DNA from: Oculina patagonica
Taxonomy: Eukaryota
Length of the DNA stretch: 64,000 nt
Assembly (NCBI RefSeq): GCF_052425735.1
Contig: NC_135761.1
Coordinates: forward strand, 21,390,001 to 21,454,000
Direction of reading: 5' to 3'
Of the stretch, positions 20,537-52,914 are shown piece by piece. Below the pieces are notes generated by a model. It was given only the letters and a program-made list of their open reading frames with translations. It searched no databases and was not told the origin of the DNA. Within the stretch, counting starts at the first letter, position 1, and every line of letters begins with the position of its first letter. The translations under genes were made by a program, and so were the position numbers.

Positions 20537-21490
20537 TCACTGGGCTTTACTTGTTGTGATCTCGCGAGCGCAGGCCGACTCGGCGTGTTTATTAAGGTAT
20601 GATTTCAGAGCGAACGTTCGATCGCAGCGGTCGCACTTGAACTGCTTGAGCGGGGAGTGCGTCTGCATGTGCGCTCGGAGATTCGAACGATCCGCGAACG
20701 CCTTGTTGCATTCAGGACACAAGAAGGGTCTCTCACCCGTGTGAGACCTCATATGTCCCTGTAGAAGCCATGGCCGGCTGAAGGCTTTCCCACAAACATC
20801 GCACTTGTGAAGAAGCTTGTGAGTCAAAACATGCATTGCCAAAGCCGGCATAGACACATACGCCTTACCGCAATGTTCACAGCGCTTGGCAAGCTTACTG
20901 TCCAAGCTTCTGTGAGTCTGTTTATGTCGGGAGAGATTCGACGACGTGGCATACGACTTGCCACATTCAGCACACACATACCGGCTTCGAGCACTGCTGG
21001 AGTGTTCAGCACCTTTCTGGCGCCGATCCGGGCGACCAGCGCTAAAATCTTCAACACAGTTACCGTTTTCATCTAAACTCACATCATCATGATCCTCCTC
21101 TTCAGCGAATCCGTTCGCTTTTTCACCGTTTTCACGGTGTTTTAGCTTGGTATGTGGTAGGGTTTGTGAGACCGATGCCTTTCCCGGCTCGCTCGTGGCT
21201 CCTAAAAAGGGAAGCGAGTGAAAAAACCCAACAGGTGTTACCCAGGAGAATACAATCAACAAATTTCTCTGTGTCAGACCAAGGCGCAAAACGAAACATC
21301 CAAGTAAAATACATAAGCAAGGCCCAATTTTTTTAAATAAATAATAATAATAAAAATAAAAGAATATTTTGAAACTGAGGACAAAAACGTTTCGCTCACC
21401 TTCGGTAACAGTCGGGCCTTGTTGGAACCCAGGGCTTGAAGACAAGCTTCCATATTCTTTTCCTTTTTTAATCAAGAACGATTTCGGCAT
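20537..21490 (-). CDS. SCRT: Transcriptional repressor Scratch (Snail superfamily). Exons 21490-21400 and 21201-20537; 251 aa spliced
   Basis: N-terminal SNAG motif MPKSFLIKK; Scratch-box-like [10 protein letters not shown]; fingers [106 protein letters not shown] are characteristic of Scratch. Intron GAAG|GTGAG...CTTTTTAG|GA. Confidence 0.96.
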
Positions 21491-25863: not shown

Positions 25864-26521
25864 GCTGCAGGTGGTGTCGATCCACAGCGTGCACACAACA
25901 GAACACACAGCAGCCTGGCGACCAGCTGGCCAGCCTACACGCCATTCAGCTGCATTGGCAGTCAAAATTGTGATATTGACTCTGTGGTAGAGCAAGTCAC
26001 ATCGTTTATCATCTGCACGAATGGTATTTCTATCTACCTGCTCATCCAATAAAAACAAAATAATAAATAAGCATTGCTGAGCCAGCTCGAAGACGACCAT
26101 CTGTTTCAAACAACCCTAAGCTTAAGAAATATTGCCCTAATCCCAGAAGATACTACACTCCTTTTGTTCTACTCCGTGGGCTCAAAAACAGCGTGGCTAA
26201 GTCCAGCTAGTTAAGGGGTATCTGAACAAACGCTTTAAGGAAGTCTCGTGATCGGGGTAAACAAAGAAGACAAAAAGAGGAAGCTACGCGAATCTATTTT
26301 CATTTATGAGGAAAGTAACCCAGCTATTGGGGTTCCGTTGATTTACATAGCAATTTTCAAGTTGAGAGAAGAGTGATCTGACCAACGAGTGTCACCAACA
26401 GCCCCGATAGTTTACCGCACACGTGATTATTTTGCTGTCTTTATACTTCAGTCGAAAAAATAAAACATATGCCGTTGAGAACATTTGTTTTGTTTTTTTC
26501 GCTACTCAGGAATCTTGTAAA

Positions 26522-27021
26522 NNNNNNNNNNNNNNNNNNNNNNNNNNNNNNNNNNNNNNNNNNNNNNNNNNNNNNNNNNNNNNNNNNNNNNNNNNNNNNN
26601 NNNNNNNNNNNNNNNNNNNNNNNNNNNNNNNNNNNNNNNNNNNNNNNNNNNNNNNNNNNNNNNNNNNNNNNNNNNNNNNNNNNNNNNNNNNNNNNNNNNN
26701 NNNNNNNNNNNNNNNNNNNNNNNNNNNNNNNNNNNNNNNNNNNNNNNNNNNNNNNNNNNNNNNNNNNNNNNNNNNNNNNNNNNNNNNNNNNNNNNNNNNN
26801 NNNNNNNNNNNNNNNNNNNNNNNNNNNNNNNNNNNNNNNNNNNNNNNNNNNNNNNNNNNNNNNNNNNNNNNNNNNNNNNNNNNNNNNNNNNNNNNNNNNN
26901 NNNNNNNNNNNNNNNNNNNNNNNNNNNNNNNNNNNNNNNNNNNNNNNNNNNNNNNNNNNNNNNNNNNNNNNNNNNNNNNNNNNNNNNNNNNNNNNNNNNN
27001 NNNNNNNNNNNNNNNNNNNNN
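26522..27021. other. Assembly gap (500 N)
   Basis: Run of exactly 500 N, typical of a fixed-size scaffolding gap. Confidence 0.99.
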
Positions 27022-28416
27022 TTAAAATACACCTAATTTCAATTACGTCATAGAAAAAAGTGAAAGGAATAAATTAGCTTTATCATTATAACGGTAGCAT
27101 TTAATGAAAACTCACAAGTTTATATCTGTACACTTATAAATTGATTTATGTGTATTTTGAGTCGTTTTGAGGTCATTTCTACCGGTAAATTTCAAACATG
27201 CCTTCAATTAATTTCTTCTGACAACCCTATTGGAATTAGGTGTAGTTTGAAATATTTTAGAGTTACTTTTCAAAGATCAGCAATCAACCAATCGCGTCCG
27301 CGAAGACGTTCATTCTCCGTGATCCATTATCAGCAGAAAAGTACCGCAAACTTAAAGGACCCTAGTCAGCCACGCCTTTGTTTTTGTTTTCATACGAGAA
27401 TTTCTGTATTATATTTTTCGCGGAGCGTGTCTAAAGGAAAGAGATCAATGCGAAATTGCCAAAGTAATTAAACAGACTTCAATTGCAATAAGAATTCGCT
27501 TCGCCATACAGTTTTTATAATTTCGATGGCATCCAAAATGGCGGAGGCTGACTAGGATCCTTTAAAGTGGAAACAAAAACAAGTCGCTAAGCGTAAGCGC
27601 GCGATGCGTTGTATATTTATTCCAATGTAATTGATGTGGTGCAAATTATGTCGGGTTTACTGTTCGACACCTAAGTCGACCCACTAGTGAACACCGTTAT
27701 CATGCCATCGGAAGACACCTTAAAACACAACATGACAACAAAGGACAAAGATCATCTCTTGAATGTTATAAAAAAATAAAGAAGCAACTCCCAAATCGCG
27801 ATTCGCGCTAAACTTTTTACTTGACACTTTCGTACCTTTAATTAGAATTTCTCAATTTTTTAATCTCTTGTTTTTTACTTTGGAAGTTATACCCATAGGA
27901 CATACAAATATTTGTTTTTCGTGTCTTTTATATTCGTCTCAACTTTTACTTTTTGACTTGATAAATGGCGTAGAGAAGAACAAAAACCGTCTGCAATTTG
28001 CAAGCCATGGTGTCACAATCCTGACCGACCAAAAAAAAACCGTGATAGAAATGCCAAGGAAAACTGATTTTTTTAGTTCACAAATTGATCCTTGTTCGTG
28101 AATGAAGACCCAAAATTAAACGCAGTCGGACTCCATACGTCCGAAGTTATTTGTTTAATTAAATACAGCACGCACTGACACTTTGAACGCTAATGAACGT
28201 GATCAAACACTTTTAAAATATTCCAATGTGCTCTGTCAACTTTGCATATATTTAATTTCAAAACTGCAACCGTTAACTCTCTACGTGATAATCGGGTCAA
28301 AGATGACTTCTAATTCGAAACGTCGAAGTTTTAAAATGTCTCTCATTTTCACTGTCAAGTGCTTTTGCGTCGATAAACTATAACAAAATGTCACTCAAAA
28401 CCATGATGTATCATTA

Positions 28417-36123: not shown

Positions 36124-37119
36124 ATGGCCGATATAAACGTTTCCTCTTCTGACGCCGGAATCAGTAATCACACCACTCAGCACCGAGATGGAGATGAGGA
36201 AAGCTGTTACATCCCTGGAGTGTCACAAACGTTGCAACGAGATTACTTCTATTACACTAATGTAGTGTTGACACCGGTCAATACGCTGTTAGGTATCTGG
36301 ATTGTCCTGTCAAACGGGTTAATCTTGATAGCGATTCTAAAGGGCGGAATGCGAATTCGTCCAGGATTTCTGTTGCTGTGTAGTTTGACCTTGACTGATC
36401 TTCTGTGGGGAGGGCTGGTGACCCCAGTGTATTTAAAATATAGGGTTCAGGAAATTATCAACAGCCAAGTTTGCGCGTTAAATCGCAGCGAGAGGGATGA
36501 CCCTGTGATGGTTGCATCCTTTTTCTTGTGTTTGCTCGGCACTGTAGGTAGCCTTGCTGTGATAAGCTTGGATCGTTACTTAGCTGTTGCTAAGGCAATG
36601 TGGTATAAGGTCTCTGTAAAACTCTGGCACGCCTGCCTGGAGTGCTTTGGGGTGTGGCTTCTCTCCATTTTTATTATCACAGCCAAGATAACCCGCATTG
36701 TACCACAGAATGTAGTAGAGGTGCTAGAGGCCTGTTATGTGATAGCAATCTCCTTTTTCATTGTCATCGTTCAGGGTTTGACGCTTTATGTTTTAAATAA
36801 GCATAACAATTCCGTGGCCCAGAATAGCGACCCAGCAGCGGACCCGGGGCAGGGGAACAATCCAGTTCATACAACTGCAGCCATTGAGCGCAAATTAACT
36901 GTCACAACAAGTTGGGTTGCGGGGGAACTTGTCCTGGTGTTGATTCCTTGTGCTATAGTTGTAGTTATTTCAAAGACAGCCAATCCAGCCACCTTTATGT
37001 TTATGGAACCGTTGTATTTTCCAATCGCCTCGATAATCTCCAGTATAAACCCAGTGTTGTACCACCGTCGAAACCCTCAAATACGACAAAGTGTATCTAA
37101 GCTGTTCAAATGTCAATAA
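36124..37119 (+). CDS. Orphan class A (rhodopsin-like) GPCR G1, single coding exon, 331 aa
   Basis: Seven hydrophobic segments; SNGL (TM1), SLTLTD (TM2), DRY (TM3), W (TM4), ERKL..T (ICL3/TM6), NPVLY (TM7); N-glycosylation sequons NVS and NHT; splice acceptor ccctAG at 36118-36119 just before the ATG. Confidence 0.93.
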   Translation: MADINVSSSDAGISNHTTQHRDGDEESCYIPGVSQTLQRDYFYYTNVVLTPVNTLLGIWIVLSNGLILIAILKGGMRIRPGFLLLCSLTLTDLLWGGLVTPVYLKYRVQEIINSQVCALNRSERDDPVMVASFFLCLLGTVGSLAVISLDRYLAVAKAMWYKVSVKLWHACLECFGVWLLSIFIITAKITRIVPQNVVEVLEACYVIAISFFIVIVQGLTLYVLNKHNNSVAQNSDPAADPGQGNNPVHTTAAIERKLTVTTSWVAGELVLVLIPCAIVVVISKTANPATFMFMEPLYFPIASIISSINPVLYHRRNPQIRQSVSKLFKCQ

Positions 37120-38884: not shown

Positions 38885-39465
38885 AATTTACTGATCGATG
38901 GTATACTGCTAGCTACATAGATATTACCCAAATAGTTTCCTTTAAATGTTAGAAAACGTCCTAAATATTTTGAACAAATTTTGGTCGTGCATGCGCGCCT
39001 TTTTTCTAATGTTAAATTTAGAAATTATTGTTTTACCTTTTTTTTGCCAGAGACTCGTGGGGAATTTCATTTTAAGTTTCTTCTGTTCAGGATTATGTAA
39101 AAAGGCCAGATTAAAAGAAAAAGTTACTTTTAGAATATTGCATTATCTTCAAATGCAAACCGTTAAATTTACCGATCGTTGGTATACTCCTAGCTACATG
39201 GATATAACCTAAAGTGTTTCCTTCAAATGCATGTTAGGAAACTTTCTAAATATTTTAAACAAATTTCGGTGCATGCGCGCCTTTTTTTCTAATGTTTTTA
39301 AATTCAGAAATTAATGTTTTACTAGATCTTCCACTTTCTTTGCAAAAGACTCGCGGGAAATGTTATTTTAAGTTTGTTCTGTTCAGGATTATGTAAAACG
39401 GTCAGATGAAAAGACAAAATTACTTTCAGAATATTGCATTATCGTCAAAAACAAACCGTTGAAAT
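38885..39465 (+). repeat. ~281-bp tandem repeat, 2 copies, upstream of G2
   Basis: gatcg.tggtatac..ctagctacat at 38893 and 39174. Confidence 0.8.
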
Positions 39466-40258
39466 GAACATGACACATTTGCTCCACGCCGCCACGAAAT
39501 TGACAAATCGTTGAAACAAATCAGGTTTTATTTGAGAAATTGAGAAATATTCGTTTAGCTGCAACTGAGCCTTACGCGTGAAGATATCCGGCGAGGACCT
39601 CGAGGAGTTCGTTGGTGTGATTGTGGTAGATTGTAAACCGAATCTTAGCTTAGACGGTAAGGTTTAGACATTTCGACTTTTGTCTCTTTCATATTGAAAA
39701 TGCGTAATTTTCCTGTAATGAGGTATTTAGGGGTGAGCACAGTGGTGTGATTCCACGTTTGTGAACGGTCGATAAATGCTTAGTATTTTTACATTATCCG
39801 AACGCCAAACATCACGAAAATGTCAATTTAACACGATACTATGATAAAATAAGATAGTAACTACGGTAAACGATATTAGTTTTATAATTAGTGCCGAAAA
39901 TATCGCGAGCGCAGCGTAAAATTGGTTTGTCAAGATATTCCGTCTCGTGAGTGGGTTCAAACATCTTTGAAACTTCCTTGGAAGTCTTCGGGAAACTTCC
40001 TTTAACATCGGAATAGTTCGAAAATGATAGGAAACGTTCGTATGACCTTCAAAAAACAATTTGTGAATCTTTGCAAATCTCATCTCGGTCTAGAAACTGT
40101 TCGGAAAACAAAACGTTGCTAGAACGGAAAAACGTTGCACCTGCCGAGTATTTTTAGGACAGCCCCTCCCCCCTCCCCCTACGTTCCAAAACGCTCCGCC
40201 GCCTCTGCCTACTGTGTTTCTGTAACAAAACTTTTTCATCTCTTTTCACAGCGTGAAC

Positions 40259-41233
40259 ATGAGGCCGAATTTGACTACAAATGACACGCAGATTGCTTTT
40301 CCAGGCCTGGCAATGGAGCAGGCAAAGCGACCGTGTTTTTCCTCAGGAATCTCACAAACTTTCCAGCTTCACTTCTTTTATTACTCCAACTTTTTTCTCG
40401 TACCGGTCACCACTTTGTTAGGTCTGTGGTGTTTCCTGTCAAACGGGTTAGTCCTGATTGCCATTCTCAGGGGTGGCCTTCGAATCAGGCCAGGGTTTCT
40501 GTTGCTGTGTAGTTTGACTCTGACTGATGTCGTGTGGGGAGGGCTGGTTACCCCCGTGTATGTTAGATTCAGGGTCAAGGAGTTGCTTTCTGGCAAGGCG
40601 TGCACCAATCCTGGCGATTTGGATTCGCCTCTTATGGCTACATTTTTCTTTTTATGCTTTTATTCTACGCTGGGTAATCTTGGAGTGATAAGCGTGGATC
40701 GCTACTTAGCAGTCGCTAAACCAATGTGGTACAAAACGACCGTCACGATACAGCATGCTATTTTTGCTTGCAGCGGAGTGTGGCTGGCATCAATTTCAAT
40801 GGTGATTTCATGGCAAGTGGAAGTGTTTCCTCACAAAGCGAGCGAGATCTTTCGAACGTGTTTCGTTATCCTCTTCTCTTGTCTGGTTGTAGGTGTTCAG
40901 ATATTAACTCTTGTGACCCTTCGTAAGCATAACAATGCAGTCGCACAGGTAATGGAGGAAACCGCTCGGGTAAATCCTGTTACCGCTAATAATGCAATCG
41001 AGCGCCAGCTAGCAGCGACAACTCGCCATGTTGTCTGTTTACTGGTTTTGTTGATAATTCCCACGGCGTTTCTGGTGGGTTTATCACAGATTCTAAGGGT
41101 GAAAATCTATTCATTTGTAAGGCCCTTATTCTATCCTACCACCACTCTTTGCTCTGGTATAAACCCCGTGTTGTATTACAGAGGAAATGTCCAGATTAAA
41201 GATGGAATCACTGAACTTGTCAAATGGCAGTAA
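40259..41233 (+). CDS. Orphan class A GPCR G2, single coding exon, 324 aa. The ATG is at 40259; the GTG start in the ORF track lies just after a splice acceptor
   Basis: 7TM with SNGL, LTLTD, DRY, NPVLY; acceptor tcttttcacAG at 40250-40251; candidate upstream donor ACG|GTAAGG at 39657. Confidence 0.93.
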   Translation: MRPNLTTNDTQIAFPGLAMEQAKRPCFSSGISQTFQLHFFYYSNFFLVPVTTLLGLWCFLSNGLVLIAILRGGLRIRPGFLLLCSLTLTDVVWGGLVTPVYVRFRVKELLSGKACTNPGDLDSPLMATFFFLCFYSTLGNLGVISVDRYLAVAKPMWYKTTVTIQHAIFACSGVWLASISMVISWQVEVFPHKASEIFRTCFVILFSCLVVGVQILTLVTLRKHNNAVAQVMEETARVNPVTANNAIERQLAATTRHVVCLLVLLIIPTAFLVGLSQILRVKIYSFVRPLFYPTTTLCSGINPVLYYRGNVQIKDGITELVKWQ

Positions 41234-41822
41234 ATGCGAGATGTCGAGTGATGGCAGTTATCCTTATTTTAGTTCTCGTTCAAGTAGATACTACATGGCA
41301 GCTGATCATGACTAAACTTTGTGTCCCTGAGTTACGCTGAAATCGAACCTATTAAAGACTACCTTATTAAAGGAAATTGCTAAAGTCGGGTTAATTTTTG
41401 CTAACGTTTTATTTTCGCGCCGTTAACTACGTGACGTGTAGCGTTTACACATGTGTTTACTAATTTCCATTATTTCGGCCCCAATTTCTCAATACAGTCA
41501 AGACGTTCTTGTCTCCTAGGAAAGGGCATTATTTCATCAGGGTGGAAGTATTGGTATCACTGAAACTGTGATGAACGCTCGAGGTGGTTAGATTTCTTCT
41601 CTAACCCCTAAGTTTAGGATAATTCGCTTAGTGATGAAATAAACTTATCAGTTCCTGTTGTCGTAACAAGCGTTTTCTTTGTATACGTCGTGTTACTTTC
41701 CTTCACTTTAAAATTTTACCCTCTCTTTCGCGTTGATTTTCTTGATTTAGTTGGAAAGTAATTTTTCCTTCAAATTCCAGTTAAAGTCGCATTAATTTCA
41801 AATGCCTTAACTAACACATACG

Positions 41823-42786
41823 TTAAAGAGACACTGTCACCAGTTTCACTTCATAAATCAAGAGCCTAAAGACATATGGAAACTAAGAATAGTGATCCAG
41901 TTTTGTTAAAAATCACCATGTGAGTGCACTTAAGCGATAAACGAGTGAGTATTTTGTGATGTCTTCAGGTATTGGATCTCAATTTGAAAAAGTCAGGCTG
42001 ATTTTTTCAAGTTTTGTCCTTTTGGAGTGGAAGAACACCTAAAAATTAACAACAACAATTTACTTTATTATCTCCATGTTGATGTACTAGGTGCATTTCA
42101 TTACGAGAAGACCTATTGGCCAATAGGCCATTTCCGATATATTAAAATTCTAACTTGGCTCCGAGGTTTGGGGGAATAAAACAAAAGATATCACGTCGAG
42201 GTTCAGGAATGAATAAATCATTTCTTTTGTTTTGTTTTACTCCCCTAGCCTCGCAGCCACGTTAGAATATTAATATATCGGAATTGGCCTATTTTAGTAC
42301 GTTTTGCCGAAAAGCATTAAAATCCCCGTGACAGTGTAATACAAGGAGGCAAGCGTGGCCGAGTGGCTTAGGGCGCTGGTGTTGTAATCCGGAGATCCCC
42401 GGTTCAAGACCTGCCCCTGCCACTAGCTGGACTTGTTTCTCGGTTGTCCCGAGTTCAAATCCTCGACCACGCTTTGTATATAGCTGTTGTGGTTCAATTT
42501 TATCCTTGGTTCAAATTTTATTTTCCTTTGTTTTTGGGTATGGTAATGTGTGATAATGAGTTAAAAACAAAGGAAAATAAAATTTGAACCAAGGAAAAAA
42601 TTGAACCACAACATAGCCAACTGGTCTGCCTCCTGCCAGTTGGGATCTTTAACCTTGTTATGTTCATTTATAAATTATTAGTTTCCTCTGTTTCAGTGGC
42701 ATGCCTGTAAACTAGCTATCTCGTTGAGATGTGAAGCTAAGTGCATGACCACTATAAACATATATATATATATAGTGTCTCTTTAA
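41823..42786. mobile_element. TTAA-flanked TIR element (Kolobok-like) carrying nested insertions
   Basis: TTAA-agagacactgtcac...gtgacagtgt[SINE]agtgtctct-TTAA. Contains a MITE at 42122-42292 (aataggcca..tggcctatt) and a SINE at 42345-42772. Confidence 0.65.
42345..42772 (+). mobile_element. tRNA-derived SINE, itself interrupted by a MITE at ~42485-42613; related copies at ~46380-46620 (+) and ~50540-50715 (-)
   Basis: ggaggcaagcgtggccgagtggcttagggcgc (A box)...ggttcaagacc (B box); body ccaactggtctgcctcctgccagttggg; (TA)n tail. The inserted hairpin tgttgtggttcaattttatcc...ttgaaccacaaca has a relative at 38529-38670. Confidence 0.75.
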
Positions 42787-43284
42787 TTTCCTATAATAAG
42801 GTAGGATGTTTTTTCAGCTTTCTTTTTGCATACTTTGAAACTTAATTCATAACTGCAAAGTGAGTTTTGAATATTGTAAAATTAATATATAAAATAAACT
42901 AAAAGGAGTAATTCATCTTATTAACAAAACATGTCTTCCATATCACTTCATTTATGTATTGTAGTTTCTAACTTTCTTCAAAATATTGGCATACAAAAAA
43001 ACTCACACGTGCAGCCTCGTATGCATAAAATCTAACAGAACGACGAACAGTATACGAATTAGCAAGAAGACAAAAAGTTACGATTTTATTATAACACACT
43101 ATTTAAAGTCCTCATTGACTGTGAAGTTGGTTAATGTCAGGTTAAATAATTATTAGGTTGTGTCTTACATGCCTTAAATGATCTAATAAACGCCTCCCCT
43201 GAAGTGTAAAGTTTGTACAGTGTATTAGACGCCCCCCTGTAATAAACGCCTCGTATCCTATAGACGCCCCCTCCAAAATTCACC

Positions 43285-43396
43285 TAGCCTGCGTAGCAGG
43301 CGTCTGTGTAGTTTTCAGCGCGCGCGCCTTTCGCGTTTCTCCCATACGCGCGCTACAAAACCTACTCATCTTCATTATTTATTACCGAGCAGGCTA
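43285..43396. mobile_element. TAG-terminal MITE with 9-bp TSD AAATTCACC
   Basis: tagcctgc...gcaggcta; TSD at 43276-43284 and 43397-43405; absent from the mirrored arm near 44434-44450. Confidence 0.8.
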
Positions 43397-45287
43397 AAAT
43401 TCACCACAAAAACCAGGAAAATGCTCCATGGAGTAAAATCACGCAATTTATTTATTTTTCTGCTTGACGCAGACATCGAAGAGGCCAAAAACGCCACCAT
43501 GGGTGACCCAGATGACTAAGAAAAACGTCGATATCCTAGAATTTAGGACTGGAAAGAATCTAGGACTAAATGTCCCCGGAGCCCATCATTTCTCGAGCCA
43601 AGGCTCCGCCGGCTAAGAGAACCGAAAAGGGCTGGAACGAGAATGAAACGAGAATGGTGTTACCCTGGAGGGGAAAAGAAGGAAAGAAAAGGAAACGAAA
43701 CGAAAAGCAAGGCAAGTGAAAGGAAGGAAAAGAAAGAAAATGAAAAGAGAAGGAAAACGGGGGAGAGGAAAGAAAAGAAAAGGAAAAAGAAAGCATGCAG
43801 TCGTCGTTTTGTTTTGCCAGAAAGCGTCACAGTCCCAGCAACTGGCTTTGTAGCCAACCTTCGATTTTTGTGGGCGATTGAAACGATCTTTGCCAAGGAA
43901 AAAGGACTTAATCCGGCAAGTGTTCTGAAAAATCAACCAAAGGTTCACAAAACCATAAAATTTATTAACACAAGATTAACGACGGCGCTTAGAAGCTTCG
44001 GTTTGGAAACCTAGATAAGGTAACACAAGGATTACATCTTTCTTGGGAACCGTGGTAACAGATTCGGAAAGACTGTTCCTATGTTTATTTAAGACATCAT
44101 CAACGTTGAAGGAAGTTATGCCATTCGGGGTTAAATAGATATGAGGCGTTTATAAGAGAGAGGCGTTTATTTCACTTTTACTCTAAAAACGTCAATAAAA
44201 CAAATAGGATGCGTAGTTTGCTAGCGGAGTAAGATACAAAAAGAGTTGGTAAGTAGGAAACTAATCTAATCTGCTCTAATGCAAAGCCTAGAAATGCCGT
44301 TCATATTTGGATATCGACGTTTTCTTAATCATTTTTTTAGTCGTTTTCTTAGCCTCTTCGATGTCCGCGTCAAGCAAGAAAATAAATAAATTGCGTGATT
44401 TTACTCCATGGAGCATTTCCCTGTTTTTTTTTAGGTGATTTTTGGAGGGGGCCTCTTTCGTGTTTCGTACGGGATGGTAAATGGGGAGAGGAACGGGGAG
44501 AGGTGTAAAGTAAGCGCGCGGAGCCTGGAGAGAATCGAAACGAAAGCGCGCGGGGTAAGCCCGTCGTCCCCCGCGCTCTCCCTATTTTAATTTTTCGTGT
44601 TTTCGCCTTCCTCCCCCCGTGTTTTTCGCCTTCCCCCACTAAAGGAGCCTCTGCGGAGGAGAGAGGGAGGGGCGTTTATAAGATACGGGGCGTTTATTAG
44701 AGAGGGGCGTCTAATACAAACTTTACACTTCAGGGGAAGAGTTTATTTGAAAATGTTAGCATTATTCCTTTTAGTTAATTTTATATACTGATTTTACAAT
44801 ATTGTTGTTGATTTTGGGATGAGACAATTTTTCTCAAAGAATTGGTAAAATTTAGAGAAATAAGAAATATTGGAGATTTTATGTGATTTTAAAATTAGAA
44901 TTTAAAGTTCAAAATTGCCTTGTAGACGGACACCAGACAGTCCCTGACAACCTGGAGTGCTCTTGCGTGGGGGTCAACTGTCTGGTGGTGTTTCAAAAAC
45001 AATTTTCTTTCTCGTTTCACTCAAATGCACATTTACCCCCGCGTTAAGTAATAAAACTCACTTTGCAGTTCAACCCGGTATAGCGGGGTTTTGTTTGTCT
45101 GCAACGCAGGCTTTTTCAGTTATGAATTAAGTTTCAAAGTAAGCAAATGGAAAGCTGAAAAACATCCTATTCTTCAACAGGTTCGAGTTCACTGAGCGGA
45201 CGCAACGTTGAACAGTCAGCTGTCATGAAGTACCTACTTGAACGAGCACTTAAACAGGGGTAACTGCCATCACTCGACATCTCGCAT

Positions 45288-46262
45288 TCACTGCCATTTC
45301 ACAAGTTTAGTGATTCCGTCCCTAATCTGGGCATTTCCTCTGTAATACAACACAGGGTTTATACCAGAGCAAAGAGTGGTGGTAGGATAGAATAAGGGCC
45401 TTACAAATAAATTGATTTTTGTACCAAGGATCTGCGATAAACCGATTAGAAACGTCAGGGGAATTATCAACAAAACAAGTAAACAGACAACATGGCGAGT
45501 AGTCGCTGCTAGCTGGCGCTCAATTGCGTTATTAGCGGTAGCAGGATTTACCCGAGCGCTTTCCTCCATTACCTGTGCGACTGCATTGTTATGCTTACGA
45601 AGGGTCACAAGAGTTAATATCTGGACAGCTACAACCAGACAAGAGAAGAGGATTATGAACCACGCTTGAAAGATCTCGAGCGCTTTGGGAGGAGGCACCT
45701 TAACATGCCGTAATATCACCATTGAAACTGATGACAGCCACACTCCGCTGCAAGCAAAAATAGCATGCTGCATCTTGACGGTCGTTTTGTACCACATTGG
45801 TTTAGCGACTGCTAAGTAGCGATCCACGCTTATCACTCCAAGATTACCCAGCGTAGAAAACAAACATAAAAAGAAAAATGAAGGCATAAGAGACGAGTCC
45901 CAATCGCTAGGAATGGTACACGCCTTACCAGAAAGCAACTCCTCGACACTGTGTCTAACATACATGGGCGTCACCAGCCCTCCCAACACGACATCAGTCA
46001 GAGTCAAACTACACAGCAACAGAAACCCTGGCCTGATTCGAAGGCCACCCCTGAGAATGGCAATCAGGACTAACCCGTTTGACAGGAAACACCACAGACC
46101 TAACAAAGAGGTGACCGGAACGAGAAAAACGCTGGAGTAATAAAAGAATTGAAGCTGGAAAGTTTGTGAGATTCCTGTGAAAAAACACGGTCGCTTCGCT
46201 TGCTCCATTTCCAGGTCTTCTAAAGCAATCTGCGTGCCATTTGTAGTCAAGTTCAGCTTCAT
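45288..46262 (-). CDS. Orphan class A GPCR G3 (inverted copy), single coding exon, 324 aa
   Basis: Close paralog of G2 and G4 with an intact ORF and DRY, NPVLY; acceptor at 46271-46270; candidate donor at 47310. Confidence 0.93.
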   Translation of the reverse strand: MKLNLTTNGTQIALEDLEMEQAKRPCFFTGISQTFQLQFFYYSSVFLVPVTSLLGLWCFLSNGLVLIAILRGGLRIRPGFLLLCSLTLTDVVLGGLVTPMYVRHSVEELLSGKACTIPSDWDSSLMPSFFFLCLFSTLGNLGVISVDRYLAVAKPMWYKTTVKMQHAIFACSGVWLSSVSMVILRHVKVPPPKALEIFQAWFIILFSCLVVAVQILTLVTLRKHNNAVAQVMEESARVNPATANNAIERQLAATTRHVVCLLVLLIIPLTFLIGLSQILGTKINLFVRPLFYPTTTLCSGINPVLYYRGNAQIRDGITKLVKWQ

Positions 46263-48092
46263 GTTCACGCTGTGAAAAGAGATGAATAAGTTTTGTTTTA
46301 CACAAACACAATAGGGCTCAGGCTTAGAATTTGGAGTCTTCTCACTGATTCAATACATTTTCTTTCATGCTTTCTTCTAGTGATAGATTAATACCACATC
46401 CCTCCCTGCTACTAGATTGGAATTGTGTTTGGTCATCCCGAATTCAACTTCTCCACTATGTGTAAATAACTAGCTGGTCAGCCTTCTGCCAGTTGGGGCT
46501 TCTAACAAGTTCATGTTTGATTTTCATTATTTATTTGTTTATTTTTTTATTTACAGTGTCCTCAATTAGCACAGCAGTGCTAAATAAATCGACGCTTATA
46601 TAAAGTGATTTATTATTTATTATTTTGTTTATTTATCGACAACATTGAGAGGCTTTGCAAGAATATTCATATTTCATTTTTTTTTTTTGTTGCTATGCTT
46701 TTTTTCAGTTTTGGACTTGAGTCACATCAAGATAATCTGTTATCTTCGCTTAGCTCACATCCTTCCTCGGTAGAGAATTAAGTTACGAGACTCGCTTATA
46801 TCATGTCGCACAGATGAATATAGGCTTTCTGTGCTCCAAGGCTTCTTATGTCTTCTTATTGCGCATCTGAATTCTACACTGGTTCGTTCGTACGTTCATT
46901 GGACAACTTTAGCAACTTACCTTTTACATATGTGAGCGCTAACGACAAAGAGGCTTTCCAAAAACGTTTACTTCGCTCCACTGCAAAATTCTTCGGTGAT
47001 GCGGTCGAGCTTCAATACCTGATGAACATAAAGATTTAGACGATTTGTTTGACGTTTTTTTAAAAACCCATCTTTATATCAATTTTATGGAACATATTAC
47101 GCTTAAATTTGCGTTGGGTTTTAAAGGAAGTTTCACATCACGGACCCCTCTTACAAGACAAGACCATGCCGCTATCGACCAAAAAGATTTAAATTTTTCA
47201 AGGCAGTTTGAACGCGCAAATTATCTATTTTTACCGCATTAAAAATCAATTCAACTTTTTTTCGCATTTTCAATATGAAAAAGACCAAATTCAAAATGTC
47301 TAAACCTTACCGGCTAAGCTGAAGTGTAATCACAATGATGAGACGAAATATTGGTTAACAATCTTTCAGAATCACACGAACGGACAGCCTGAGATTCCTC
47401 GCAGGATATCTTTATACGTAGGGCTCAGTTGCAGCTAAACGAATATTCTCAATTTCTCAAATAAAATCTGATTAAAGTTTTAGGATTGAAGGATTTGTCA
47501 ATTTCGTGGCGGCATGGAGCAAATGTGTCATTTTCAACGGTTTGTTTTTGAAGATATCTTAAGGTTACTATTGTTAGCGGCTGCTAATTTTAGCGATTTT
47601 AGCGAGTTAGACGAAAATCGTTAAATTAATTATCGCTAAAATTTGTATCGGTCAACTTTAATACTCGTTAAAGATAATTTACACGCTAAGATTTAATGGA
47701 CTAATATTATGAACGAAAACGCAACCTGCAAGAGTATTGACGCAAACAAATTATACCTCCAAAAGTACTGCAACTGAAAACAAACTTACTAATCTATTTT
47801 ACCGACCATTTATTCCTCACGTTTTGTTAAAAACGTTTTGCTTATAAAACATTTACTTGCAATGCGTGCGCTAAAAAAAGGCTAATTTACACGCTCCTGT
47901 TTGTCGACTACGGTAGATCGGTTAATGTGCAGTGCAAACACTGCATATGTTTTCACAATATCATGTGTTGTGTTAGTCAAAGCCTTTTTTATAAAACGTT
48001 TCGAAAACTAAAATGGTGGGTTGCAGATGGCGTTTTTGTTTATCATATGAGGCCCGACACGCGAAAATTAATGAAGTGGTCACAGATTTTTA

Positions 48093-48205
48093 TAGCCTGC
48101 GAGCAGGCTCTCTATTCGGGGGCAACGTGAATATTGAACTCTTCGAGCGCCGAAGGCGCGATCTCGTGCACGTTGCCCCCGAATAGAGAGCCTGCTCGCA
48201 GGCTA
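48093..48205. mobile_element. 113-bp hairpin MITE with 37-bp perfect TIR and 9-bp TSD AGATTTTTA
   Basis: tagcctgcgagcaggctctctattcgggggcaacgtg / cacgttgcccccgaatagagagcctgctcgcaggcta; empty paralogous site at 38041-38066. Confidence 0.92.
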
Positions 48206-48820
48206 AGATTTTTAAAAATCGGCCGACTTGTCGGATAAGTGTCGCGCGATGCCGGAAGGCGCCTAAGGAGAAGACAGCGCCATTGCTCGTGTACGCGTTA
48301 ACCCCAACCAACGAGGGATAACGACAAAAGCGCCAGGTACGAAGGCAGACCCAGGTTACATTTAAACGAGCTAGTCTGTGAACAGGTTCCCAAAGGCAAC
48401 GCTCGGCTCGCTTCGCTCGCTAATTTCTTTCTTTTTTTCGCCCCGATTTATCCTGGCCGACAAATCGTAGCGTGCAAATTAGCCTTATTAACTGAGAAAG
48501 AAAATCCGGCGCAGAAACTTCTTACCATACACCGAACAATGGGGTTACGCTTGTGTGGTAATACACACTTGTTTGATTCAGAATTAATGGAACAAATTGC
48601 ATTGGTCATTAACCTTACCAAGTAAAATTTGGGGCGTAATATTTTTTTTATTATTATTATGATAAAAAAGTCGATTTAAAGACTGCTTATAAAGTAAACC
48701 TTTTAGTGATCTTACAAATGTGTATTAAAAAATTTCATTTTATTTTATTTCCGTGTTGGCCAGGAATTAACAACTGCACGATCTAAATTTCGGTACAATT
48801 AAAATAGCTATAAAAATTAA

Positions 48821-49675
48821 TAAATTTACTGATCGATGGTACACTTCTAGATACATGGATATAACCCAAAGTGTTTCCTTGAAATATTAGAAAACATCCT
48901 AAATATTTTGAACAAATTTTGGTCGTGCATGCGCGCCTTTTTCAATGTTTAATTCAGAAATTCATGTTTTACTAGATCTTCTAATTTCCTAACCAAAGAC
49001 TCGTGGGGAATTTTATTTAAAGTCTCGTATGTTCAAGATTATGTAAAAAGGCCACATTAAAATCAAAATCAAAATACTACTTTTAGAATATTGCATTGTC
49101 TTCAAAAACAATCCGTTAAATTTACCGATCGATGGTATACCTCTAGCTACATGGATATAACCCAAAGAGTTTCCGTGAAATATTAGTAAACTTCCAAAAT
49201 ATTTTGAACAAATTTTGGTCGTGCATGCGCGCCTTTTTAATGTTTAATTCAGAAATTCATGTTTTACCAGATCTTCTACTTTTTTTGCCAAAGACTCGTG
49301 GGGAATTTTATTAAAAGTTTCTTCTGTTCAAGATTATGTAAAAAGGCCACATTAAAATCAAAATCAAAATATTACTTTTAGAATATTGCATTGTCTTCAA
49401 AAACAAACCGTTAAATTTACCGATCGATGGTATACCCCTAGCTACATGGATATAACCCAAAGAGTTTCCTTGAAATATTAGTAAACTTCCAAAATATTTT
49501 GAACAAATTTTGGTCGTGCATGCGCGCCTTTTTAATGTTTAATTCAGAAATTCATGTTTTACCAGATCTTCTACTTTTTTTGCCAAAGACTCGCGGGGAA
49601 TTTTATTTAAAGTTTCTTCTGTTCAGGATTATGTAAGAAGGCCAGATTAAAAGCAAAAAATTACTTTTAGAATAA
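48821..49675 (+). repeat. ~295-bp tandem repeat, 3 copies, between divergently oriented G3 and G4
   Basis: gatcgatggta at 48831, 49127 and 49422; each unit carries ggtcgtgcatgcgcgcc. Confidence 0.88.
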
Positions 49676-50830
49676 ACCGTTGAAATGAACATGACACATT
49701 TGCTCCATGCCGCCACGAAATTGACAAATCTTTCAATCCTCAAACTTTAATCAGATTTTATTTGAGAAATTGAGAATATTCGTTTAGCTGCAGCTTAGCC
49801 CTACGTATAAAGATATCCAGCGAGGACTCCGAGGCTGTTCATTCGTGTGATTAATTGTGAAAGATTGTTAACCGATTTTTCGTCTCATCATTGTGATTAC
49901 ACTTCAGCTTAGCCGGTAAGGTTTAGACATTTTGAATTTAGTCTGTTTCATGTTGAAAATGCGAAAGAAAGTTGAATTGATTTTTGTTGTGGTGCATATA
50001 GAATATTTGCGCGTTCAAACTGTCTTGAAAAATTTAAATGACTTAAATCTTTTTGGTCGATAGCGGCATTTTCTTGTCTTGTAAGAATGTCCGTGATGTG
50101 AAACTTCTTTCAAAACCCAACGCAAATTTAAGCGTAATATGTCCCATAAAATTGATAGACATAGGTCAAACAAATAGTCTTAATCTTCATGTTCATCAGG
50201 TGTTGCAGCTCGACTGCATCACTGAAGAATTTTGCAGTGGAGCGAAGTAAACGTTTTTGGAAACCCTCGTTAGTGCTCACATAACCATTAATCATGTAAA
50301 AGGTAAGTTGCCGAAGTTGTCCAAAAACGTAAAAACGAACCAGTGTAGAATTGAGATGCGCAATAAGAAGACCTAAGAAGCCTTGGAGCACAGAAAGCCT
50401 ATATTCATCTGTGCGACATGATATAAGCGAGTCTCGTAACTTTCTTCTCTGCTGAGGAAGGATGTGAGCTAAGCAGATTATATTGATGCGACTCAAATCC
50501 AAAGCAGAAAAGCATAGCAACAAAAATGAAATGTGAAAAAATAAAAAAAATAAATAAACAATGAAAATCAAACATGAACTTGTTAAAAGCCCCAACTGGC
50601 AGAAGGCTGACCAGCTAGCTATTTACACAGCGTGGAGGAGTTGAATTCGGGACGGCCAAACTCAGGACACAAATCCAATCTAGTAGCAGGGAGGGACGTG
50701 ATATTAATCTATCACTAGAAAAAAGCATGAAATGAAATATATGGAATGCATTGATGTGACTCCAAATTCTAAGCCTGAGCCCTAGTGTGTTTGTGTAACA
50801 AAACTTTTTCACTCTTTTCACAGCGTGAAC

Positions 50831-51805
50831 ATGAAGCTGAACTTGACTACAAATGACACGCAGATTGCTTTCCCAGACCTGGCAACGGAGCAAGCGAAGC
50901 GACCGTGTTTTTCCTCTGGAATCTCACATACTCCCCAGCTTCACTTTCTTTATTACTCCAACTTTTTTCTCGTACCGGTCACCACATTGTTAGGTCTGTG
51001 GTGTTTCCTGTCAAACGGGTTAGTCCTGATTGCCATTCTCAGGGGTGGCCTTCGAATCAGGCCAGGGTTTCTGTTGCTGTGTAGTTTGACTCTGACTGAT
51101 GTCGTGTGGGGAGGACTGGTGACGCCCATGTTTGTCAGAAACAGGGTCAATGACTTGCTTTCTGGTAAGGCGTGTACCAATCCTAGCGATTGGAAGTCGT
51201 CTTTTATGCCTGTTTTTTTCAATTTATGTTTGTTTTCTACGCTGGGTAATCTTGGAGTGATAAGCGTGGATCGCTACTTAGCAGTCGCTAAACCAATGTG
51301 GTACAAAGCGACCGTCACGATGCAGCATGCTATTTTTGCTTGCAGCGGAGTGTGGCTGGCATCCGTTTTAATGGTGATATTACGGAAAATGGAGGTGCTT
51401 CCTCCCATAGCGCTCGAGATCTTTCAAACGAGTCTAATCATCCTCTTCTCTTGTCTGGTTGTAGCTGTCCAGATATTAACTCTTGTGACCCTTCGTAAGC
51501 ATAACAATGCAGTCGCACAGGTAATGGAGGAAAGTGCTCGGGTAAATCCTGCTACCGCTAATAACGCAATTGAGCGCCAGCTAGCAGCGACTACTCGCCA
51601 TGTTGTCTGTTTACTTGTTTTGTTAATAATTCCCCTGGCGTTTGCAATGGGTTTATCGATGATTCTTGGTGTGAAAATCAGTCTATTTGTAAGGCCCATG
51701 TTCTATGTTTTCGCCACTCTTTGCTCTGGTATAAACCCCGTGTTGTATTACAGAGGAAATGCTCAGATTAGGGACGGAATCACTAAACTTGTGAAATGGC
51801 AGTGA
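50831..51805 (+). CDS. Orphan class A GPCR G4, single coding exon, 324 aa
   Basis: Intact 7TM ORF with DRY, NPVLY; acceptor ttttcacAG at 50822-50823; candidate donor CCG|GTAAGG at 49916. Confidence 0.93.
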   Translation: MKLNLTTNDTQIAFPDLATEQAKRPCFSSGISHTPQLHFLYYSNFFLVPVTTLLGLWCFLSNGLVLIAILRGGLRIRPGFLLLCSLTLTDVVWGGLVTPMFVRNRVNDLLSGKACTNPSDWKSSFMPVFFNLCLFSTLGNLGVISVDRYLAVAKPMWYKATVTMQHAIFACSGVWLASVLMVILRKMEVLPPIALEIFQTSLIILFSCLVVAVQILTLVTLRKHNNAVAQVMEESARVNPATANNAIERQLAATTRHVVCLLVLLIIPLAFAMGLSMILGVKISLFVRPMFYVFATLCSGINPVLYYRGNAQIRDGITKLVKWQ

Positions 51806-52914
51806 ACGCGAGATGTCGAGTGATGGCAGTTACTCCTGTTTATGGTCGTTCAAGTAGATACTTCATAACAAATGACTGATTTTTGCGTTCCTGAGTTACG
51901 CTGAACTCGAACCTTTTTAAGACTGCCTTATTAAAGGAAATTGCTTAAGTCGCGTTAATTTTTGTTAACGTTTTATTTTCGCGCCGTTAATTTCGTGTAG
52001 CGTTTACTTATAAATTGGTTGTCATTCATTTCTTTTGTTTGGTTAAGTTTCTGAAAATGCTGATTTGAAAATATATGAAATAAAATACTAAACGAGAAGT
52101 TTCAGTGTTTTTGGTTAGACGGCTGCAGATTTGTGACTCATTAAATGTTAAGAGATTTGTATGGGAAAAAAACACCCTGGCCTGCCTAGCCTCGTTTTCA
52201 TGTTTTTGGTCATATAAATGTCCCTGTAACTTACCATTAGATAAAACTATAGCCTTGAAACTTCATTCATTGATTTACCTTGACTTGAACTTTAAGTTAA
52301 AGTGATTTCATTTTTTTACAAATGTTTCTTCTGGGAGCCGAAAATTAACGGCAGCCATATTTGAATTGGGTCTATTGATATAAACTGTGATGAACGCTCG
52401 AAGCGGTTATATTTCTTGTGTTAATAACCCTCTACGTTTTGGATTATTAGCTTAGTGTTGAAATAAACTTATCAGTTCCTGTTATCTTAACAAGCTTTTT
52501 CGTTGTGTACGTCGCGTTAATTTAATTCACTTTCTATTTTTACCCTCTCTTTCGCGTTGATTTTCTTGATTCAGTTGGAAAGTAATTTTTCCTTCAAATT
52601 CCATTTAAGACGCGTTAATTTCAAATGCCTTAACTAACACATACGTTAAAGGGACACTGTCACCAGCTTCACTTCATAACTCAAGAGCCTAACGACATTT
52701 ATACCATAACCGAGAGAATTCTCGCGCGCTGATTGGTCCAAAGTTATGGTCGATGAGAGTATAGACCATGAAAGTGACGTCAGAGCACGCCACGCACACG
52801 CGCGGGCTAGAAATGTGTAAGTTTGGTCTCTATGAATGAAAGCGAATTTCATCTTGTTTTGTTTGAATCAAGGACGCATTTGCTTTTGGAATTCAGGATT
52901 GGAATTCTACTCAG

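Follow-up and report, generated by a model that had tools for sequence, protein, structure and literature searches.

In the stony coral Oculina patagonica, three neighbouring genes for orphan rhodopsin-class G-protein-coupled receptors (GPCRs), here called G2, G3 and G4, differ from each other mainly in the half of the receptor that faces the ligand, while the DNA encoding the cytoplasmic half is largely alike down to its silent sites. The genes lie in the window analysed here, i.e. the 64 000 nt of C4:21390001–21454000 in the 529-Mb genome; all positions are those of the window unless marked C4. Our preferred reading, to which we give a probability of about 0.6, is that of a young Oculina-specific triplication with a constrained coupling half, a fast-evolving ligand half and short-tract gene conversion between the copies.

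All three are intronless class-A GPCR genes of 324 aa. G2 occupies the open reading frame (ORF) 40253–41233 on the plus strand (from its ATG, 40259–41233), G3 the ORF 45288–46268 on the minus strand (from its ATG, 45288–46262) and G4 the ORF 50825–51805 on the plus strand (from its ATG, 50831–51805); the start ATG is codon 3 of each ORF, and all three ORFs are intact. In this + − + order, G3 stands tail-to-tail with G2 and head-to-head with G4, with 4–5 kb between genes on contiguous sequence and with flanks that differ from gene to gene. The 981-nt alignment of the three genes contains no indel, and the pairs differ at 91 (G2–G3), 105 (G2–G4) and 79 (G3–G4) nucleotides, i.e. by 8–11 %.

The protein was split into two halves using an AlphaFold2 model and the anchors N1.50, D2.50, R3.50 (of the DRY motif), W4.50, P6.50 and P7.50 (of NPxxY), with a guessed anchor at 5.50. 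The extracellular half comprises model residues 1–57, 93–136, 176–207 and 265–297, which cover the N-terminus and the outer parts of transmembrane helix (TM) 2, extracellular loop (ECL) 1 and TM3, of TM4, ECL2 and TM5, and of TM6, ECL3 and TM7; the remainder is the cytoplasmic half. Amino acids vary among G2–G4 at 65 of the 166 extracellular positions vs 9 of the 158 cytoplasmic ones, and nonsynonymous differences are enriched in the extracellular half (p=2e-9 to 8e-16). An earlier note on this DNA, made by reading the sequence, had described this clustering on the ligand-facing side, and all the peptide strings that it quoted were found in the translations.

The same note had called the genes identical at the nucleotide level around intracellular loops (ICLs) 1 and 2, and nearly so over ICL3. 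Indeed, three blocks on the plus strand (coordinates of G2) are invariant among G2, G3 and G4, i.e. 121 nt in lower TM1, ICL1 and lower TM2 (40415–40535, columns 163–283), 73 nt in lower TM3, DRY and ICL2 (40663–40735, columns 411–483) and 64 nt in the cytoplasmic extension of TM5 and the start of ICL3 (40898–40961, columns 646–709). A uniform spread of substitutions, raised as an objection, does not describe these genes: with 135 variable columns, the 121-nt run exceeds the longest run in all 20 000 permutations (permuted maximum 99, p<5e-5). Silent sites taken alone cluster less, with p=0.12 for the longest run and p=0.016 for the sum of the three longest runs. The first two blocks are not invariant in G5 (C4:6817950–6818921), an intact, unlinked G2-type paralog on the same chromosome, 14.6 Mb away and of ~85 % nt identity, which differs at eight sites in the first block (five silent) and at seven in the second (six silent).

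A second, inverted array with the genes G2b, G3b and G4b lies ~250 kb from that of the window, at C4:21.687–21.703 Mb; the two are referred to as arrays b and a. When the silent changes fixed between the paralogs are polarised on the tree, 22 fall in the extracellular and two in the cytoplasmic half, which offer 114 and 118 silent sites, respectively (~4e-5 by a two-class binomial). Among codons with identical amino acids, 18.6 % vary in the extracellular half vs 5.6 % in the cytoplasmic half (p=0.0024). Three controls are even. The a and b copies have 14.5 silent differences in the extracellular and 15 in the cytoplasmic half, the synonymous divergence (dS) of orthologs is the same in both, and fourfold sites in comparisons with G5 differ at 0.19–0.24 and 0.19–0.21. 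Estimated by the Nei–Gojobori method (NG86), dS between G5 and the array is 0.38–0.44 in the extracellular and 0.22–0.25 in the cytoplasmic half, with the fourfold sites being equal. Since silent counts are even between a and b, in the orthologs and in G5, the two halves show no intrinsic difference in mutation or in silent constraint, and the idea that the extracellular-coding segments mutate faster was rejected on the same grounds. The split of 22 vs 2, taken with its even controls, thus appears to be the strongest result in favour of conversion, and the homogenised cytoplasmic faces that the earlier note had proposed are borne out at silent sites. The cytoplasmic-half segments have been homogenised among the array members about as recently as a and b split.

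Recombination between the paralogs is also detected by the pairwise homoplasy index (PHI) test (p=0.0008 with G5 and 0.002 without) together with exchanged patches. Codon 283 in ECL3 (41099–41101, plus strand; nt 847–849) reads GTG in G2, G4 and G5 and ACA in G3, G3b and G2b, i.e. a patch of three bases has moved between paralogs. G3b carries the states of G2 at nt 408, 410, 613 and 938, and G2 keeps the state of G5 at nt 297, 304, 846 and 980, where G2b has that of G3 and G4. A candidate G2–G3 conversion tract covers TM7 and NPxxY (41113–41198, plus strand, nt 861–946 of the coding sequence; 45323–45408 in G3): G2 equals G3 over nt 861–914 and G3b over nt 861–946, while G4 differs there at many sites. 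Its permutation p value is 0.012 for G2–G3 and 0.003 for G2–G3b, uncorrected for 21 pairs. Cytoplasmic and extracellular segments, four of each kind, follow one another at intervals of 100–170 nt, which leaves two options: short tracts, or longer ones that selection removes when they wipe out extracellular differences. A switching of relationships along the gene had been read from similarities in the N-terminus, ICL3, the C-tail and TM7. Polarised with G5, most of these turn out to be changes unique to one gene, i.e. to G3 in the N-terminus, to G2 in ICL3 and the C-tail, and to G4 in TM7; genuine mosaic patches exist elsewhere.

The proposal that conversion keeps G-protein coupling constant is not sustained. 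The cytoplasmic face of the protein is equally conserved in G5 and in the single-copy orthologs of other species (ratio of nonsynonymous to synonymous rates, omega, 0.15–0.30), where silent sites are not homogenised, which points to purifying selection rather than conversion as what holds the coupling face constant.

Whole-gene omega is 0.59–0.66 for G2 against G3 and G4, and 1.1–1.85 for G3 against G4. Extracellular omega is 0.69–1.26 in array a and 0.87–1.89 in array b, while cytoplasmic omega stays at 0.05–0.28, with the exception of G3b–G4b, where 1.32 rests on five changes. Single-copy orthologs of other corals show 0.26–0.42 in the extracellular and 0.15–0.24 in the cytoplasmic half, so that replacement is accelerated 2–4-fold in the extracellular half only, cytoplasmic omega being unchanged. 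Likewise, the extracellular ratio of nonsynonymous to synonymous changes (N:S) is 2.9–3.6 in the arrays vs 1.3 in orthologs (p=0.005 and 0.0005). The reading frames are clearly maintained, by all signs in the sequence as functional genes, because the coding alignment has no gaps, vs ~0.15 gap openings per mismatch in the flanks, and because the extracellular half contains none of 5.4 expected nonsense codons (p=0.005).

Variable positions in Ballesteros–Weinstein numbering include 2.53, 2.60, 2.61, 2.64, 2.65, 3.29, 3.33, 3.36, 3.37, 4.60, 6.51, 6.52, 6.55, 6.59 and 7.42. At 35 positions which we take to form the generic ligand pocket, a list drawn up once the variable sites were known and therefore only semi-independent, N:S is 21:0 on the branches between paralogs (p=0.005), omega over all array branches is 2.6 (p=0.03), and N:S is 24.5:3 vs 31:16 at the other outer transmembrane positions (p=0.05). 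Positive selection on the pocket is plausible, and these figures are suggestive of it rather than a demonstration. Of the claim that the ligand pocket is diversified, the concentration of divergence on the ligand side stands, whereas an extracellular omega of ~1 falls short of formal evidence for diversifying selection.

The triplication itself is specific to the Oculina lineage, on two grounds: the six array genes form one clade of the protein tree (support 100/99), with G5 and the other species outside, and in three other coral assemblies just one G2-type gene follows a G1-type gene, at a distance of ~8 kb. In the nearest species, one gene is accompanied by a frameshifted copy. This pair (ENA ERZ25067872, L031:15500–16459 and L031:10001–10954) arose by independent duplication, and shows the same asymmetry as the array, with 7.8 % nt difference in the extracellular vs 2.5 % in the cytoplasmic half.

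As to the class of receptor, G1–G4 score 58.8–66.4 bits with Pfam PF00001 (7tm_1; gathering cut-off 30.5), the match covering profile positions 2–260 of 260, at E values of 1e-16 to 1e-18 (about 1e-17 for G2–G4). The AlphaFold2 model, built with 55 homologues, has a mean predicted local distance difference test (pLDDT) score of 76.5 and a predicted template modelling (pTM) score of 0.72, and shows seven helices and a helix 8 (residues 33–71, 78–111, 124–153, 164–186, 192–235, 242–279, 284–307 and 311–322). N62 (N1.50), D90 (D2.50), D147-R148-Y149, W175 (W4.50), P268 and N302-P-V-L-Y306 are invariant in the family, the Trp of CWxP (6.48) is replaced by Ile in all copies, and Cys is absent both from 3.25 and from ECL2. 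The top Foldseek matches are all class-A GPCRs (probability 1.00, TM-score 0.57–0.77); they are distributed among adrenergic, muscarinic, dopamine and cannabinoid receptors, with 17–24 % identity.

The automatic NCBI name of these genes is ‘cannabinoid receptor 2-like’. Like human CB2, they belong to the class-A alpha group and do without the canonical TM3–ECL2 disulfide, and a search of PDB sequences with the family profile returns CB2 at E 1.4e-19; however, 5-HT1B scores about equally (E 2.8e-20), and identity is ~19–20 %. Orthology to cannabinoid receptors was therefore rejected. Because the two score equally and the other matches are generic to class A, the name looks like that of a best hit only, and the receptors are best regarded as orphans for which no inference of a ligand would be justified.

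The b block (C4:21681897–21712432) contains G1b to G4b and the copy of an aminotransferase-like gene, and its non-coding DNA is 95–98 % identical to 29.8–59.0 kb of the window. The coding sequences differ from their a partners at 40 (G2b), 17 (G3b) and 12 (G4b) sites. In G4b (C4:21687309–21688280), CAG has become TAG at codon 314, which shortens helix 8 by 13 residues, and the NCBI model is a 311-aa protein. Logan contigs from two other samples have b-type states at nine of 14 listed variant positions, and at the G3 sites sample X7 shows no state but the b-type one. Since b-type states stand in place of a-type ones in these samples, a single locus with a and b as its haplotypes is the probable reading, the alternative being a true inverted segmental duplication; if they are alleles, the TAG of G4b may be a segregating truncated allele. 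Another copy, 99.99–100 % identical to the window, is found on the unplaced contig C1296 (~135500–172500). It begins exactly at an N gap of the window (~26520–27030; ~27.0 kb), the sequence left of which is unique, and it is likely an assembly redundancy or a haplotig placed at a scaffold joint. The boundaries of both copies were inferred from sequence searches. A genome-wide search for donor cassettes, fragments or further copies returned none beyond the three genes, G5 and the b and C1296 duplicates. Other GPCR arrays of this genome lie, for example, at C12:30.14 Mb, C9:22.48 Mb and C11:16.66 Mb. Some 14 kb upstream of G5 lies a broken GPCR gene (C4:6803927–6804900) with a stop and frame changes and 44–52 % aa identity to G2.

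Taken together, G2–G4 would have arisen as a young tandem triplication of one orphan, intronless rhodopsin-class GPCR gene in the Oculina lineage, laid out as + − + inverted repeats. All copies would have been kept functional, with the cytoplasmic half under strong purifying selection, while the extracellular half, including canonical orthosteric-pocket positions, would have gathered replacements at about the neutral rate since duplication. The acceleration of 2–4 times over single-copy orthologs most likely reflects diverging ligand specificity. Short-tract conversion across the array, for which there is statistical evidence, would erase differences in the cytoplasmic half, silent ones included; converted patches in the extracellular half would be rare or selected away, some persisting as mosaics, e.g. 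at codon 283 and codons 136–137. Homogenisation would then be a permitted by-product, and the constancy of G-protein coupling would come from purifying selection.

Several observations weigh against this reading, and many of them fit a less adaptive one that we regard as a serious, if clearly less probable, contender, namely that constraint on redundant copies was relaxed, the ligand half drifting under birth-and-death turnover, with conversion incidental. In the a-priori partition, extracellular omega is ~1 and not significantly higher (best p=0.06), and the codon model M1a (M0, M1a and M2a were our own implementation) already accommodates the data by placing 56 % of sites at omega=1. When the site-model check proposed earlier was run as M1a against M2a, the likelihood-ratio statistic was 9.6 (p=0.008); however, the selected class, 1.2 % of sites, consists of codon 283 alone, the only site called by M2a and itself a conversion patch, and we rejected the signal as evidence of selection. 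Extracellular replacements are barely more conservative than random ones (mean Grantham distance 67.6 vs 74.5, p=0.09), i.e. nearly as radical, which is compatible with plain relaxation and does not separate it from selection. The pocket list is semi-independent for the reason given above, and the 5.50 anchor was guessed. The premature TAG in G4b and the frameshifted pseudogene of the nearest species fit birth-and-death turnover, and the pair in that species shows its extracellular excess even with a pseudogene as one of its members. Nor did a look for transcripts yield any: one polyA RNA run had no reads on the coding sequences of G2 or G3, which is not evidence for or against expression, and the single 152-nt contig on G3 comes from a run that was only guessed to be RNA. 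Still, a receptor with a drifting pocket is not expected to keep cytoplasmic omega at 0.05–0.28, to gain no indels and to avoid all expected nonsense codons, and the pocket counts of 21:0 between paralogs and of 24.5:3 vs 31:16 at other outer transmembrane positions are likewise at odds with relaxation.

Conversion itself could be dispensed with, though this seems improbable, if the copies were very recent, the blocks identical by descent and held by purifying selection, and point substitution fast elsewhere. Whole-gene dS is low (0.08–0.17), the longest invariant run of silent sites is unexceptional (p=0.12), and of the recombination checks the PHI test is significant while a GENECONV-like permutation of identical tracts is not, since none survives correction for 21 pairs; the latter test is powerless inside invariant blocks. 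The silent deficit relative to the flanks is also modest, with two of 82 cytoplasmic fourfold sites differing vs ~8 % mismatch in the G3–G4 flank. Against an account without conversion stand the PHI result, the adjacent three-base patch at codon 283 and the two-base patch at nt 408/410, which are common to otherwise non-sister copies, the 22 vs 2 fixed silent changes where a/b copies and orthologs are even, and the 8–9 % divergence of the G3–G4 flanks vs 2.4–2.6 % at silent sites of the cytoplasmic half. Much more remote is a dedicated diversification device in the style of immune or antigenic variation, i.e. targeted hypermutation of extracellular-coding segments or donor cassettes. The extreme local clustering of differences and the higher NG86 dS of the extracellular half would suit it, but the even a/b silent differences, ortholog dS and G5 fourfold sites indicate no local difference in mutation rate, and additional fragments or cassettes of the gene were not found in the genome, so that the ‘receptor-diversifying array’ of the earlier note is not upheld as a dedicated system. 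Equally far-fetched is that G2–G4 are mis-assembled haplotypes of one gene. The region is redundant, given the near-identical C1296 copy starting at the N gap and a b array that behaves like an allele, its states replacing the a-type in other samples; however, the three genes differ by 8–11 %, stand 4–5 kb apart in + − + order on contiguous sequence with unlike flanks, recur in the same order in the b copy, and G2 and G3 are both covered by contigs from independent samples. Irrespective of whether a and b represent haplotypes or a duplication, G2, G3 and G4 themselves are separate genes rather than haplotype artefacts, which speaks to a concern that the earlier note had itself raised.

Around the array, the neighbouring gene G1 (36124–37119, plus strand) is likewise intronless and encodes a divergent 7tm_1 GPCR of ~50 % aa identity to G2–G4; in other corals it serves as the conserved anchor of the locus, and it stands outside the homogenisation of G2–G4. 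The inverted repeats formed by G2/G3 and G3/G4 are 1.0–1.1 kb long and 90–92 % identical: the arm at G2 (40213–41305) is 90 % complementary to 45216–46308 at G3, and the arm at G3 (45251–46281) is 92 % complementary to 50812–51842 at G4. Homology between G3 and G4 extends ~1.3 kb further upstream (47187–47536 vs 49686–50039), with 8–9 % mismatches. The spacer of the divergent pair G3/G4 contains a 295-nt unit in tandem duplicate (48939–49528, 95 % identity). Between G2 and G3, 41459–42858, 43059–43458 and 44059–45258 are very high-copy repeats with a word depth of thousands to hundreds of thousands, vs ~50–500 for the genes, and some polyA reads map to them. A segment ~540–800 nt upstream of the G2 start (~39464–39716) is 78–97 % conserved before all array genes and ~88 % upstream of G5, although the flank around it cannot be aligned; candidate explanations are a promoter, a 5′ exon or repeat sequence. 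Further out, a C2H2 zinc-finger ORF of Snail-like appearance (20537–21490, minus strand) is not duplicated with the array and is missing from the b block, while exons of a class-V aminotransferase/selenocysteine-lyase-like gene (53515–57231, minus strand) are duplicated along with it.

Clusters of chemosensory GPCR genes in vertebrates, i.e. olfactory receptors, V1R and TAS2R, are known for tandem, lineage-specific duplication and pseudogenisation. Smell and taste receptor clusters of animals already show this kind of pattern, which is found here in a coral: the Oculina genes share with them intronless class-A-type genes in tandem, duplication, pseudogenisation, conversion between neighbours and raised dN/dS. 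They differ in lacking sequence orthology, their nearest solved relatives being amine and cannabinoid receptors at ~17–24 % identity, and in forming an array of only three genes per haplotype. Primate and rodent Mas-related receptors (MRGPR) offer another parallel, since Choi and Lahn reportedly found in 2003 that their Ka/Ks exceeds 1 in extracellular parts and lies below 1 in transmembrane and cytoplasmic parts. Both families combine a fast extracellular with a conserved cytoplasmic side among young paralogs, but omega in Oculina is ~1 and not clearly higher, and variation there extends to residues in the outer half of the helices. For the V1Ra and V1Rb receptors of Mus, gene conversion together with raised dN/dS has been described in clustered intronless GPCR genes (PMC2644715).

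The earlier note had taken the genes for candidate chemosensory or non-self-recognition receptors, which is a hypothesis. It is tempting to speculate that a and b are segregating haplotypes and that conversion keeps making alleles by moving patches of pocket and loops (codon 283, codons 136–137), resulting in a receptor set comparable to the major histocompatibility complex (MHC) for the discrimination of symbionts, microbes or conspecifics. We consider this unlikely; if true, such an MHC-like polymorphic receptor set would be the first GPCR-based system of its kind described in a cnidarian.

Coral genomes are known to be marked by rhodopsin-like GPCRs amplified in tandem: GPCRs are the commonest domain among coral-amplified orthogroups (34/192), and gene conversion in tandem arrays of corals has been called very rare (Noel et al. 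2023, Genome Biol 24:123, PMC10236652). The Oculina trio resembles these families as a lineage-specific tandem amplification of class-A GPCRs with orphan function, and differs from them by its recombination signal and by the silent homogenisation of half its coding sequence; it therefore qualifies the published view on the rarity of conversion. In such duplicates, whole-gene dS gives misleading dates, and site-model tests can be driven by converted codons. Tandem duplication has given corals hundreds of orphan class-A GPCR genes, and what these receptors sense is known in hardly any case. As near-isogenic receptors with a shared coupling face and ~65 differing positions, mostly on the ligand side, G2–G4 are well suited to deorphanisation and to the mapping of ligand specificity by patch swaps.

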